Shown here: piece by piece, positions 128-64,000 of the stretch
Layout of the letters: each line of letters begins with the position of its first letter
How positions within the stretch are numbered: position 1 is the stretch's first letter
Sequence record: NC_025447.1
Strand: one strand, 5' to 3'
DNA: 64,000 nucleotides
Notes under the pieces: generated by a model
Databases searched by the model: none
Seen by the model: the letters and a program-made list of their open reading frames with translations, nothing else
Told to the model about the DNA's origin: nothing
Position numbers and translations under genes: made by a program

Positions 128-556
128 ATGAGTAACACAACGAAAATATCCGATAAATCCGAATTAACACAAATGTTATTCAAAGAATATTTTGAGTTTC
201 AGATAAAAGACGAACAACAATTACCACAGCAATATTTGAAAAGAATTAAAGATCCGTCAGTAATTACTAAAGAAACTAATTTTTATAATAGTATTTTGGA
301 TTTCGTTAAATCAGTTCATACAACAAGACCTATTGTAGTTTTGTTTTTTGATAAATCTATTCCTTTAGTAGTTCCTGAAAATGTATTTTTTATTTCAGAA
401 ACTGATTTAAATAATCAAAGTACTGTAAGTAGATTAAGAAATTGCTTACTTGTAGTATGTGATTCTTCTTTGTATAATAACAGAATACTATGGGATAGAA
501 GTAAACGCAATGCAGTTTCGGAAATGAATCCTGAAATTACCTTTATTATTAACTAA
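128..556 (+). CDS. hypothetical protein
   Basis: 142-aa ORF co-oriented with downstream genes; no motif recognised. Confidence 0.55.
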   Translation: MSNTTKISDKSELTQMLFKEYFEFQIKDEQQLPQQYLKRIKDPSVITKETNFYNSILDFVKSVHTTRPIVVLFFDKSIPLVVPENVFFISETDLNNQSTVSRLRNCLLVVCDSSLYNNRILWDRSKRNAVSEMNPEITFIIN

Positions 557-588
557 ATAATAAGAGAATAACTCTAAGGAGAGATATT

Positions 589-1029
589 ATGGAAGATATT
601 AATGATTTACGACACGTAATGGACTTTATCGGAAGTACTGAAGAAGATAATTCATATGATGAAGTACTATTAACTTTTATTGAAAATAGTTTGTTTTTAA
701 GTTCTGCTGCACATAACTGGCACTTACAATGTCATTTTTATACAAAGCATTTACAATTAGATGAACTATATAAAGAATTACCAGAATATGTAGACGCATT
801 TGTTGAAGGTATCATGAATAATCGTGGTGCTTTGCAAGTTGGGACTGGTAATAGTTATCGTTTTACACCAATTGAAGATTGTGTACCAATTCTTGAAGAA
901 TATGTTGAGCAATGCAGAGCAATTCATGATATGCTTGAAGAATCGGGTGATTACGGCAGTGTAAACACATTAGAAGATATTATGAGTTTTGTTGAAGGAA
1001 CACTTTACAAACTTAAAGTTTTACAATAA
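589..1029 (+). CDS. Dps/ferritin-like four-helix bundle protein
   Basis: SD AAGGAG; Dps-like ferroxidase pattern AHNWHLQ..FYTKHLQLDELY..L..YVDAFVE and C-terminal LEDI....E...YKL. Confidence 0.75.
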   Translation: MEDINDLRHVMDFIGSTEEDNSYDEVLLTFIENSLFLSSAAHNWHLQCHFYTKHLQLDELYKELPEYVDAFVEGIMNNRGALQVGTGNSYRFTPIEDCVPILEEYVEQCRAIHDMLEESGDYGSVNTLEDIMSFVEGTLYKLKVLQ

Positions 1030-1036
1030 ACTATAT

Positions 1037-1066
1037 GGAGAGTCGCTATGACTCTCCTTTTCTTTT
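1037..1066 (+). terminator. rho-independent terminator
   Basis: GGAGAGTC-gctat-GACTCTCC followed by TTTTCTTTT. Confidence 0.85.
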
Positions 1067-62554: not shown

Positions 62555-62602
62555 TTTTGGACTCCATATAATTCGTTCATTCATTTGATTTATTTATGAT
62601 AT

Positions 62603-62628
62603 AAAAAAGGCGTTCCGAAGAACGCCCG
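62603..62628 (-). terminator. rho-independent terminator
   Basis: Minus strand GGCGTTC-ttcg-GAACGCC-TTTTTT (UUCG loop). Confidence 0.9.
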
Positions 62629-62633
62629 TTATA

Positions 62634-64000
62634 TTAAGAACCGATATTAATATTACTTTTAGCTAGTGAGTTAACAATTTGAACATTTTCAACAGATGCA
62701 GTACTCAAAAATATTTGGTCTGAACGTGAAGGGATTTCAAATAGAGAACCAAATTTTGAATTTGGATTTTGTGCAACTATAACAATAGTACTAATATGTC
62801 TACCTAACTGTGAGTGTATGTAAGTACACAAATCAGTATAATAGAAACTTTCACCGAAATCCCAGTTATCAACATTGAAGTATTCATTAGTTAATGCTAT
62901 GACATTTTGACGAATTTCATCATCACTCATTGTGCTGTTTGGTAATTTCACTACTTTAAAATCAGCTTTGTAATCTTCAGCAGCACTGTTTCCAAATAAA
63001 GGTAAGTACTCAGCACTATGCCAAATGATACTATCACTAATGACTATTTTTTGTTCAACATCTTTGAACATATCTTTTAATTCAACCGATGTTGGTGGTT
63101 TAGGAATACTACCAACAGCATTATTTTTCAACCAAACGTCAACTTCAGTTTTATATGAATTGGTTAATACATACATATCAATTAAGTTTGTTCTACTAGG
63201 ATCAATGCGATTGTCGTCAGGTGCATAGTGTTTCCAATGGAAGTCTATACTAGTACGTGCATTAGTTTTAACAGTGTACTGTGAAGTAACATCTTTGTAT
63301 CCATAATAATCTAGCTTCTGATTCTCGTCAGCATTAGTTCCCATGTTATTAATTGCACGATAAAAAGCCAATTCAGGACTAACAGTGCCAGTATCATCGG
63401 AATAAGTTAAATTACTAATTAGTTGTCCCAAACGATCATTGTTATTGCCAACTGTTTGTTCAATAAAATAATATTTACCATCATAGTTAAAACCAACTAA
63501 AAATCCAGAACCTTTACTATATAATCCACTCAATGTGGTTGAACGAATTGCGTTATTTCTAACAAATTCAGTTCTTTTATATGCATTCGGCTCTGCCAAA
63601 GCTTGTTCCATTGTATAAGACCACGATGAATCAAGAAGTGTGAAGGTATCATTTGGTAACGACAGTACTGATATAGTGAAATCACTATTTTCCTGAAATA
63701 CCAAAATACCACCATATTTTAATGCATCGGTTCCAGTCCAAGTAGGAACAATTTCTTTAAATTGGTTTGGTTCCAATGGTATACCATTACTATCTACTTT
63801 CCTAGATGTAACAATAACACGAGAACCATCTAGATAGCCATTCTCTTGTTGAATTGTGTCATAAATTTGAAAATCTATATTACTTGTCAATCCTGAATTA
63901 CTACTACTAGTAGTGTTAGATGATAAAATTTCAATCTTATCACTTTGAACTGTACCAGTACTTATATCAGTAATTTTTTTAGATGATACAAAGTAAAATC
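62634..64000 (-). CDS. baseplate wedge protein (gp6-like), 5' part outside the window
   Basis: Frame is open to the window edge; NRIDPSRTNLIDMYVLT, WDFGESFY, FGSLFEI motifs. Confidence 0.75.
   Translation of the reverse strand, partial: FYFVSSKKITDISTGTVQSDKIEILSSNTTSSSNSGLTSNIDFQIYDTIQQENGYLDGSRVIVTSRKVDSNGIPLEPNQFKEIVPTWTGTDALKYGGILVFQENSDFTISVLSLPNDTFTLLDSSWSYTMEQALAEPNAYKRTEFVRNNAIRSTTLSGLYSKGSGFLVGFNYDGKYYFIEQTVGNNNDRLGQLISNLTYSDDTGTVSPELAFYRAINNMGTNADENQKLDYYGYKDVTSQYTVKTNARTSIDFHWKHYAPDDNRIDPSRTNLIDMYVLTNSYKTEVDVWLKNNAVGSIPKPPTSVELKDMFKDVEQKIVISDSIIWHSAEYLPLFGNSAAEDYKADFKVVKLPNSTMSDDEIRQNVIALTNEYFNVDNWDFGESFYYTDLCTYIHSQLGRHISTIVIVAQNPNSKFGSLFEIPSRSDQIFLSTASVENVQIVNSLAKSNINIGS

Follow-up and report, generated by a model that had tools for sequence, protein, structure and literature searches.

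The palindrome AGTACT as a highly iterated, conserved DNA-level signal in Escherichia phage 121Q and its enterobacterial relatives

Phages usually purge 6-bp palindromes, a form of restriction avoidance. What, then, is the meaning of AGTACT, a palindrome repeated along 64,000 nucleotides of sequence record NC_025447.1? This stretch (hereafter the window, numbered from its first letter) comprises positions 248,001-312,000 of Escherichia phage 121Q (NC_025447 / KM507819, identical in sequence; Asteriusvirus, 348,532 bp), a Rak2-like jumbo myovirus, and contains small early or middle genes along with those for the tail sheath and tube, thymidylate synthase and large tail fibers. A sequence-only reading of the window had reported about 120 copies, placed roughly every 500 bp, where about 22 were expected from composition, and had proposed a positively selected DNA signal. 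These figures hold: exact search finds 121 copies with a mean gap of ~530 bp, and the expectation computed from base composition is 21.8. The positions that it listed are likewise right, save for 16905, which is actually 16906. The copies are as follows.

419..63962, no strand assigned, all 121 AGTACT in the window, by start: 419, 634, 663, 1479, 1855, 1875, 2230, 2562, 3870, 3888, 4421, 4818, 4944, 5686, 5724, 5976, 6250, 8013, 8548, 8571, 9169, 9374, 9812, 10477, 10535, 11557, 12058, 12379, 12766, 13492, 13918, 14332, 14700, 15876, 16387, 16906, 16945, 17044, 17302, 18345, 18558, 18874, 19506, 20059, 20805, 20863, 22725, 24116, 24850, 25472, 25655, 27105, 27529, 27612, 29151, 30331, 30636, 31134, 32072, 32206, 32561, 32644, 33121, 34063, 36041, 36131, 36251, 36320, 36794, 37199, 37259, 37613, 37673, 38048, 38058, 38558, 38978, 39134, 39488, 39644, 40345, 40891, 41607, 42614, 44215, 45210, 45249, 45315, 45948, 46248, 47258, 47575, 48613, 49287, 49582, 50346, 51960, 51999, 53435, 54007, 54551, 55786, 55997, 56408, 57134, 57191, 57593, 59570, 59834, 60296, 60779, 61042, 61124, 61189, 61454, 62324, 62700, 62787, 63005, 63664, 63957
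1478..63670, no strand assigned, the 32 window copies with the 8-bp palindrome CAGTACTG, by start: 1478, 2229, 3869, 4943, 8012, 8570, 11556, 14331, 16386, 19505, 20804, 22724, 24849, 25654, 27528, 30635, 31133, 32643, 34062, 38977, 39487, 41606, 45248, 50345, 51959, 55785, 57190, 57592, 59569, 60778, 61123, 63663

Dinucleotide-preserving shuffles of the window yielded 19.3 +/- 4.0 copies, and none of the 100 shuffles reached 121. Over the whole 121Q genome AGTACT is the top 6-mer, with 903 copies vs 118 expected (7.6-fold, z = 72) and a mean gap of 385 bp. The top 8-mer is CAGTACTG, with 194 copies vs 3.4 expected (57-fold), and its 32 copies in the window compare with 0.7 expected. An order-4 Markov model nearly absorbs the excess in the window (98.8 expected) because the 5-mers AGTAC and GTACT are themselves inflated by the hexamer; throughout the genome the base that follows AGTAC is T in 66% of cases. 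The GTAC tetramer can be rejected as the cause, as it is just 2.2-fold enriched and conditioning on it alone predicts 39.7 copies in the window rather than 121. Among the 16 words of the form NGTACN in the window, no word other than AGTACT exceeds 39 copies.

The excess might still have arisen from protein coding, if the choice of amino acids, codons or dicodons, or repeats within structural genes, had generated it incidentally. In favor of such an origin are the frequency of Ser-Thr dipeptides (690 in 121Q), the many in-frame AGT-ACT copies of the tail-fiber genes, some at repeat-like spacing, and the high order-4 Markov expectation for the window. For a direct comparison, 564 open reading frames (ORFs) were called in 121Q (against the annotation of the checked region, 60 of 63 genes were recovered, with no false extras), and synonymous codons were shuffled within each gene so that the protein and the per-gene codon usage were preserved. 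The genes contain 735 copies of AGTACT, while the shuffled genes contain 211.6 +/- 12.8 (z = 41); for the complete genes of the window the numbers are 111 and 34.6 +/- 5.2 (z = 14.7), and for CAGTACTG in all genes 154 and 15.3. The enrichment is 3.2-4.0-fold in all frames (362/142/231 copies in frames 0/1/2 vs 112/36/63 shuffled). The palindromes ACTAGT, TGTACA and AGATCT, which had been suggested for codon-shuffled comparison, occur at or below expectation (68 vs 106, 165 vs 168 and 58 vs 88, respectively). Codon order is equally telling. Ser-Thr is written AGT-ACT 362 times vs 103 expected from codon frequencies (3.5-fold), whereas Thr-Ser written with the same codons reversed, ACT-AGT, occurs 27 times vs 70 expected (0.39-fold). 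Similarly, Val-Leu as GTA-CTN is 2.2-fold enriched and Leu-Val as CTN-GTA is not, and the Ser-Thr dipeptide itself is over-used 1.44-fold. The non-coding DNA of 121Q carries 163 copies in 35.4 kb vs 12 expected, a 13.6-fold enrichment at double the coding density. The shuffles, the codon-order contrast and the non-coding density therefore identify the excess as a property of the DNA, which even shapes protein sequence. Together with the absence of any AGTACT excess in phages PA5oct and T4, despite their similar GC content, they reject the coding explanation, to which we assign a negligible probability.

Thus, the enrichment does not vanish under control for dicodon usage and GTAC, as the sequence-only reading had allowed that it might. 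Its statement that the word occupies all three frames and both gene orientations is also borne out by the window counts, 28/12/21 on the + strand and 41/6/8 on the - strand for frames 0/1/2. Its further statement that copies lie between genes is true of the genome as a whole and fails for this window: almost every copy is inside an annotated gene, with just 29151 straddling a gene end, and four copies left intergenic by the ORF caller fall within annotated genes 532, 537 and 547.

As an observation on translation, 121Q has genes for tRNA-Ser(ACT), the reader of AGT, and for tRNA-Thr(TGT), the reader of ACA (75,464-75,555 and 77,896-77,969, both outside the window). These match codons of AGT-ACT and AGT-ACA and may represent an adaptation to the codon load of the motif.

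The trait is not peculiar to 121Q. In Salmonella phage Munch, Klebsiella phage KP13-7, Cronobacter phage GAP32 and two further Asteriusvirus species, regions of ~43 kb contain 85-102 copies each vs ~14 expected. Whole-genome counts are given below, with the expectation for each.

XbC2 (Mimasvirus): 1105 AGTACT, 122 expected
KP13-7: 954 AGTACT, 120 expected
121Q: 903 AGTACT, 118 expected
Munch: 850 AGTACT, 118 expected
T4: 29 AGTACT, 57 expected
PA5oct (Pseudomonas phage, sister lineage): 15 AGTACT, 98 expected
E. coli K-12: 400 AGTACT in 4.64 Mb, ~1100 expected from composition, 1147 in the reversed control

AGTACT enrichment is clade-wide in the enterobacterial Rak2-like jumbo phages (Asteriusvirus, Alcyoneusvirus, Mimasvirus and Munch-like phages). 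In E. coli K-12 the word stands at ~0.36 of expectation and CAGTACTG is at chance level (78 copies), so that the density of AGTACT differs ~30-fold between 121Q (2.6 per kb) and the bacterium (0.086 per kb).

Site-by-site comparison indicates that individual copies are held in place. Codon alignments of 32-55 orthologue pairs for each of five relatives were scored for retention of AGTACT, with composition-matched hexamers as the control. AGTACT is retained in 69/72/31/25/25% of cases vs 39/29/11/9/13% for the matched hexamers. Where the amino acids are unchanged, retention amounts to 88/92/87/75/57% vs 52/44/28/28/31%, with Fisher p values of 1e-7, 3e-10, 5e-6, 1e-3 and 0.04. Synonymous-site conservation in relatives, a check that had been called for, is thus about twice that of matched hexamers. 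Genome-wide comparison of 121Q with phage G17 (97.2% identity) finds 805 of 859 sites unchanged (93.7%) vs 87.9% for matched hexamers (p = 1.6e-8), and the gains and losses between these two phages affect all six positions and include both transitions and transversions. Turnover is nonetheless appreciable, with 28-42 lineage-private copies per relative in ~25 kb of aligned genes. A role in homogenization or recombination is rejected by the negative correlation between strain identity and motif density (r = -0.42). Taken with the shuffle statistics (z = 41 for the genome and 14.7 for the window), the codon-order contrast, the presence in all frames and the non-coding enrichment, the conservation strongly supports the view that AGTACT is a DNA-level signal kept in place by constraint rather than an effect of codon usage, as first proposed. 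Separately, the commonest single interchange at motif positions between 121Q and G17 is AGTACT <-> AGTTCT (10 + 3 cases), and AGTTCT and AGAACT are 1.3-1.5-fold enriched in 121Q, which hints at a second tolerated variant at position 4.

The flanks of AGTACT are mirror-symmetric. C precedes and G follows the hexamer in ~45-46% of (half-)sites, G at -1 and C at +1 are disfavored, and a weak T-rich/A-rich preference at flank positions 2-3 gives the fuller consensus (tt)cAGTACTg(aa), with nothing further out. C is the preferred -1 base in three lineages; in Munch, A is at least as frequent as C. Genome-wide, TCAGTACTGA occurs 43 times vs 0.37 expected and the 12-bp palindrome TTCAGTACTGAA occurs 13 times, once within the window:

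22722..22733, no strand assigned, the fullest consensus in the window, TTCAGTACTGAA, one of 13 genome-wide

Most copies stand alone (644 of 735 coding and 97 of 163 non-coding). Spacing is near random, with a coefficient of variation of the gaps of ~1 that rules out an even-spacing constraint, apart from a modest excess of 19-25 bp spacings (28 vs ~15).

The positions of AGTACT relative to transcription signals are more specific. Phage G17 carries a direct terminal repeat of 20,668 bp with 100% identity between its copies (record 1-20,668 and 350,150-370,817), which maps to ~135.4-155.6 kb of 121Q; the 121Q record holds a single copy of this region and its numbering begins at an internal point. 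AGTACT reaches 6.7 per kb there, the densest stretch of the genome. In the early region 121Q and G17 share 87-93% identity, against 97-100% over the remainder. A consensus scan of 137-149 kb of 121Q found 70 sigma-70-type promoter-like sites vs 42.6 +/- 6.5 in shuffles. In 19 of the 27 best promoter-like hits of this interval, AGTACT occupies one of two fixed registers: it either adjoins the -35 hexamer (aaaAGTAC directly followed by TTGCAA) or precedes the -10 hexamer by 1-2 nt (AGTACTG followed by TATAAT, or AGTACTGG followed by CATAAT). Two promoters have the motif in both registers, with the copies 20 bp apart. Among strict promoters genome-wide, the motif lies in the spacer in 20 of 42 and exactly 1 nt upstream of TATAAT in 13 of 42, and the same spacer register is present in Munch and KP13-7. 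A palindrome that overlaps or adjoins the -35 and -10 elements at a fixed position is the arrangement expected of a repressor operator. Terminators are similarly affected: 116-126 kb of 121Q contains 15 terminator-like hairpins vs 4.2 +/- 1.9 expected, and most of their stems read (G)CCAGTACT...AGTACTGG(C). The promoter and terminator classes comprise a minority of AGTACT copies.

Two further observations may be added. The gene for a sigma-70-family sigma factor (gene 167, 121Q 89,267-90,232, outside the window) is present in the motif-rich genomes; tblastn did not detect it in PA5oct or T4. Its product may take part in promoter recognition. Next to the boundary of the terminal repeat, on its inner side, 121Q 155,502-159,569 (outside the window) comprises 4 kb of very small ORFs with no AGTACT and only 9 GTAC; devoid of the signal, it may be a recent acquisition.

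Within the window, a promoter-like arrangement and several other features of the motif are found as follows.

1855..1908, + strand, AGTACT pair 20 bp apart within gene 520; the second copy adjoins a -35-like TTGCAA (1880-1885), followed after 17 nt by TACAAT (1903-1908)
38048..38063, - strand, AGTACT pair 10 bp apart, AGTACTattaAGTACT, within a tail-fiber gene; a short hairpin could form
34619..40144, - strand, tail-fiber gene 571, 16 AGTACT (2.9 per kb), mostly in frame 0, where AGT-ACT encodes Ser-Thr
52583..62584, - strand, a 10-kb gene from our own ORF call, 18 AGTACT (1.8 per kb)

The pair in gene 520 has the same layout, with the motif adjoining the -35 element, as the promoters of the early region, and promoter activity is therefore putatively assigned to it. 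Some copies in gene 571 recur at spacings of 354-420 bp (e.g. 37199/37613, 37259/37673 and 39134/39488), a pattern that suggests tandem internal protein repeats; the AGTACT copies of this gene are therefore not all independent.

A block of 121Q outside the window departs from the symmetric word. Positions 161,800-169,384 (7.6 kb, 6-14 kb inside the terminal repeat) contain no AGTACT; instead, AGTACA occurs 41 times on the sense strand and TGTACT not at all. The AGTACA sites fall in every reading frame as well as in non-coding DNA; their contexts are diverse, and they retain the usual C...G flanks. The block consists of small lineage-specific ORFs, and AGTTCA is also enriched in it (19 copies). 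The independently sequenced phages G17, PBECO4 and CRJP21 display the same pattern, with 37-40 AGTACA and 0 TGTACT, and 29 of 39 AGTACA sites are common to all four Asteriusvirus genomes. Munch contains a similar sub-block of 2.5 kb at 25.0-27.5 kb (AGTACT 1, AGTACA 11, TGTACT 1). Outside the 121Q block, AGTACA favors the sense strand no more than codon usage predicts. In XbC2, the asymmetric variant follows the sense strand of the right-end minus-strand genes (21 vs 4), and a polarity that depends on distance from the genome end is rejected on this ground. The notion that the block is uniquely hypervariable is also wrong, as the whole early region has the 87-93% identity noted above.

What could read such a word? 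We regard AGTACT, tentatively and at somewhat below an even chance, as a site recognized by a sequence-specific factor with a symmetric mode of reading double-stranded DNA. The candidate factor might be a dimeric binding protein or a restriction-modification-like enzyme, either made by the phage or supplied as a host factor confined to enterobacteria. It would coat or mark phage DNA selectively, because AGTACT is ~30 times denser in the phage than in E. coli. In the terminal-repeat early region the sites flank the -35 and -10 elements, the location expected of an operator that switches early transcription. From the sequence we infer that a protein reads AGTACT, that its binding would regulate early promoters, and that the genome-wide copies would act as marks or organizing sites. 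Of the functions first offered for the word (a site for a DNA-organizing or packaging protein, a self-marking methylase, a Chi-like recombination motif), a DNA-organizing or binding protein is the best guess. 121Q is reported to package its DNA by the headful mechanism (PMC5646251). Domain scans of 25 of 111 clade-specific ORFs and of the neighborhood of the adenine methyltransferase gene described below yielded no candidate reader.

Several observations weigh against a symmetric protein reader. The 20 conserved clade-specific small proteins scanned yielded no DNA-binding domain, and no HTH_3, HU/IHF, TetR_N, Phd/YefM or PrlF domain was found in 121Q, in which most proteins have an unknown fold. 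No architectural periodicity is visible in the spacing of AGTACT along the 121Q genome, and the promoter-spacer arrangement was not seen in XbC2, although that genome is motif-rich. A purely symmetric reader cannot explain the 7.6-kb AGTACA-only block. Finally, sequence alone cannot separate purifying selection from biased conversion that restores sites.

Enzymes that might recognize AGTACT can be narrowed down. The 121Q genome encodes a C5-cytosine methyltransferase (62,483-63,343, outside the window) and a PF05869 adenine methyltransferase (193,985-194,506). The former is present in 121Q, KP13-7 and XbC2 and absent from motif-rich Munch, and is thus accessory within the clade. In the RaK2 study, CpG methylation was reported from bisulfite sequencing, and resistance was attributed to Dam-, Dcm- and CpG-type methylation with no mention of AGTACT (PMC3622015). 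The C5-methyltransferase is therefore rejected as the reader on two counts, its reported CpG specificity in RaK2 and its absence from Munch. A ScaI-type restriction-modification target is likewise rejected: no ScaI-type nuclease (PF09569) and no N4/N6 beta-class (PF01555) or D12-class methyltransferase was found in 121Q. The DNA of 121Q is reported to migrate normally on gels (PMC5646251), which argues against a bulky modification. As for a Chi-like signal, AGTACT is its own reverse complement with mirrored flanks and hence non-polar, and these genomes have their own 10-16-fold enrichment of the genuine host Chi, GCTGGTGG; that proposal is unlikely.

The remaining enzyme, the PF05869 N6-adenine methyltransferase, offers an alternative that we consider unlikely, although not to be neglected: AGTACT would be its target, and the mark would matter for self-identification, protection or promoter control. 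Each of the four motif-rich genomes encodes the enzyme, and PA5oct and T4 lack it. A sharp 6-bp palindrome without extended flanks is typical of type II methyltransferase sites, AGTACT has adenines on both strands, the sites of the AGTACA block could be methylated on one strand only, which might give the asymmetry its meaning, and the arrangement would parallel the cyanobacterial palindrome HIP1, the core of which is a methyltransferase site. Yet the gene is one of 111 ORFs with this pattern of presence and absence, so that 110 others fit equally; characterized PF05869 members act on GATC or non-specifically; and the nearest homologues outside the clade are <= 47% identical, so the specificity of the 121Q enzyme cannot be inferred from them. 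Methylation alone, moreover, gives no reason for enrichment of sites, and the silence of the RaK2 study on AGTACT (PMC3622015) also counts against it. Slightly less probable is a functional unit that has an orientation, AGTAC(W), and is read from a single strand, as in T4-type primase priming on the lagging strand, site-specific nicking or clamp loading, with the palindrome serving as an economical placement on both strands. The AGTACA-only block (41 sense vs 0 on the other strand, in four Asteriusvirus genomes with 29 of 39 sites shared) and the Munch sub-block accord with this idea, as does the presence in 121Q of a T4-like primase/helicase and clamp loader; T4 primase recognizes three template nucleotides, of which the 3' base is cryptic, and synthesizes primers of 5 nt, so that its footprint would be 6 nt. 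However, the T that follows AGTAC in 66% of cases shows that the palindrome is preferred over the half unit, asymmetric sites still have symmetric C...G flanks, and the sense bias of AGTACA outside the block is that of codon usage. The exclusion of the opposite orientation from the block is left unexplained, and T4 and PA5oct deplete AGTACT despite homologous machinery.

Of about the same low probability as the oriented word is a non-adaptive molecular drive, in which biased mismatch repair, biased gene conversion or context-dependent mutation creates or restores AGTACT without function, in a manner that would resemble very-short-patch repair for CCWGG or the bias that uptake exerts on DNA uptake sequences. 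Neither conservation nor enrichment by itself tells selection apart from biased restoration; AGTACT occupies unconstrained places such as promoter spacers, terminator stems and non-coding DNA, the last with double the density of coding DNA; and the 28-42 lineage-private sites per relative attest to turnover. On the other hand, the precursors AGTATT and AATACT are not depleted (1.18 and 0.95 of expectation, respectively) and no homologue of Vsr (PF03852) or MutH was found in 121Q; a word bias of the Dcm/Vsr type is rejected on these grounds. The differences in sites between 121Q and G17, which touch every position of the hexamer and include transitions and transversions alike, do not favor drive either, and the fixed promoter registers and the word-excluding block point to functional discrimination. 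A signal acting in RNA (AGUACU/AGUACA), as the site of an RNA-binding protein or ribonuclease or as a self-pairing element, is a good deal less probable. The asymmetric variant does follow the sense strand, both within the 121Q block and among the XbC2 right-end minus-strand genes (21 vs 4), and the motif builds the RNA stems of terminators, but an RNA signal has no need for a DNA palindrome with mirrored flanks, the density peaks in non-coding promoter DNA upstream of transcription starts, and no sense-strand excess beyond codon usage exists outside the block. Least probable among the candidate readers is the host nucleoid-occlusion protein SlmA, which the phage might hijack or titrate by means of these sites. 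The central hexamer of its 12-bp site, GTGAGTACTCAC, is AGTACT itself, and SlmA is a feature of enterobacteria and closely related bacteria, a distribution that would agree with the lack of the trait in a Pseudomonas phage. SlmA requires G, T and a purine at positions 1-3 of this site (PMC3020112). When G, T and purine at positions 1-3, mirrored at 10-12, were sought around AGY/RCT, each phage genome gave 0-2 full matches. The required flanks are ~2.5-fold under-represented beside AGTACT (11 + 9 vs 27.6 + 23.0 in 121Q), and the preferred -1 base is C, a pyrimidine. With the flanks wrong in this way, an SlmA-binding site is rejected.

Other words are also distributed unevenly in these genomes. 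GCGC has no copy in 121Q, Munch, KP13-7 or XbC2, where 219-450 are expected per genome (0 vs 58 in the window), and is at normal levels in PA5oct (337) and T4 (184), with CpG mildly low (observed/expected 0.74-0.91). This absence suggests a GCGC-specific nuclease that would always be present in infection and is possibly phage-encoded. Nine 6-bp palindromes (AGGCCT, CAGCTG, CGTACG, CTCGAG, CTGCAG, GAGCTC, GCATGC, TCCGGA and AGCGCT) are reduced to 0-3 copies in all four Rak2-like genomes vs 26-44 expected, an extreme purging of restriction sites; PA5oct and T4 retain them. In the window, CTGCAG, GGTACC, CGTACG and CAGCTG are all at 0. The enrichment of host Chi has a top-strand bias in the motif-rich phages, with top/bottom counts of 18/11 in 121Q (1.1 expected per strand), 20/8 in Munch, 13/3 in KP13-7 and 22/11 in XbC2, and Chi is at chance level in PA5oct and T4. 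The window has Chi at 13346 and 48918 on the + strand, and at 1714, 36606, 36627 and 42810 on the - strand.

A broader proposal would join these patterns in a word-based self code of Rak2-like jumbo phages, made up of ~900 AGTACT, a word rare in the host, the total exclusion of GCGC, a word abundant there, and the enrichment of host Chi. An AGTACT factor would identify, organize and time the phage DNA, with an operator at the early promoters and the one-stranded variant AGTACA in a special early block, and a nuclease directed at GCGC could degrade host DNA freely. As a whole this scheme is speculative and we consider it improbable, on a par with the methyltransferase alternative.

Whatever reads it, a single palindrome driven upward amid the purging of palindromes points to an undiscovered sequence-specific system in this clade, which ranks among the largest groups of coliphage-like jumbo phages. 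Cross-genus conservation, the cost borne in codon and dipeptide choice, and the wiring of the word into early promoters and terminators are the evidence for constraint. The questions raised are how jumbo phages that form no nucleus might discriminate self from host DNA, how early transcription is shut off, and what purpose iterated palindromes serve. In practice, an AGTACT-rich, GCGC-free pattern is a simple signature of the clade for metagenomes, and ~900 ScaI fragments are predicted if 121Q DNA is unmodified. No earlier description of the phenomenon was found in a literature search that covered ScaI digests as well as AGTACT, CAGTACTG and highly iterated palindromes in phages.

Three known systems resemble AGTACT in part. 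The SlmA site shares an identical central AGTACT and is palindromic, and SlmA is a dimeric helix-turn-helix protein; however, the flanks it requires are disfavored in the phage, and E. coli has ~50 SlmA sites vs ~900 phage hexamers. Chi, GCTGGTGG, is likewise an over-represented short DNA word with a role in genome maintenance, but it is asymmetric and orientation-dependent where AGTACT is symmetric. ScaI (AGT^ACT) has the identical 6-bp recognition sequence; 121Q nevertheless has neither an RE_ScaI domain nor an N4/N6 beta-class methyltransferase, and restriction targets are normally depleted in phages whereas AGTACT is enriched.

The closest known phenomena are the DNA uptake sequences of bacteria and the cyanobacterial HIP1. 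The uptake sequences of Neisseria (DUS) and Haemophilus (USS) are lineage-specific self words that occur about once per kb, are tolerated in genes and form transcription terminators as inverted pairs, as AGTACT does in 121Q. AGTACT has the corresponding attributes of a self-recognition word, being dense in self (2.6 per kb) and rare in other DNA (0.086 per kb) and occurring in inverted terminator pairs. The uptake words differ in being asymmetric, 9-12 nt long and read by the competence machinery of bacteria, whereas AGTACT is a palindrome in a lytic phage. HIP1 is the highly iterated palindrome GCGATCGC of cyanobacteria. Like AGTACT, it is a short perfect palindrome (6-8 bp) found once per few hundred bp, far above expectation, in coding DNA in all frames and in non-coding DNA, throughout a lineage. 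AGTACT displays the features by which a highly iterated palindrome is recognized, namely an order-of-magnitude excess, occurrence in all frames and in non-coding DNA independent of codons, and sharing within a lineage with conservation beyond neutral expectation. The two differ in sequence; in addition, AGTACT is virus-borne and not shared with the host, as E. coli has it at ~0.36 of expectation, and it is built into promoters and terminators, with a block of the genome given over to a strand-specific variant.

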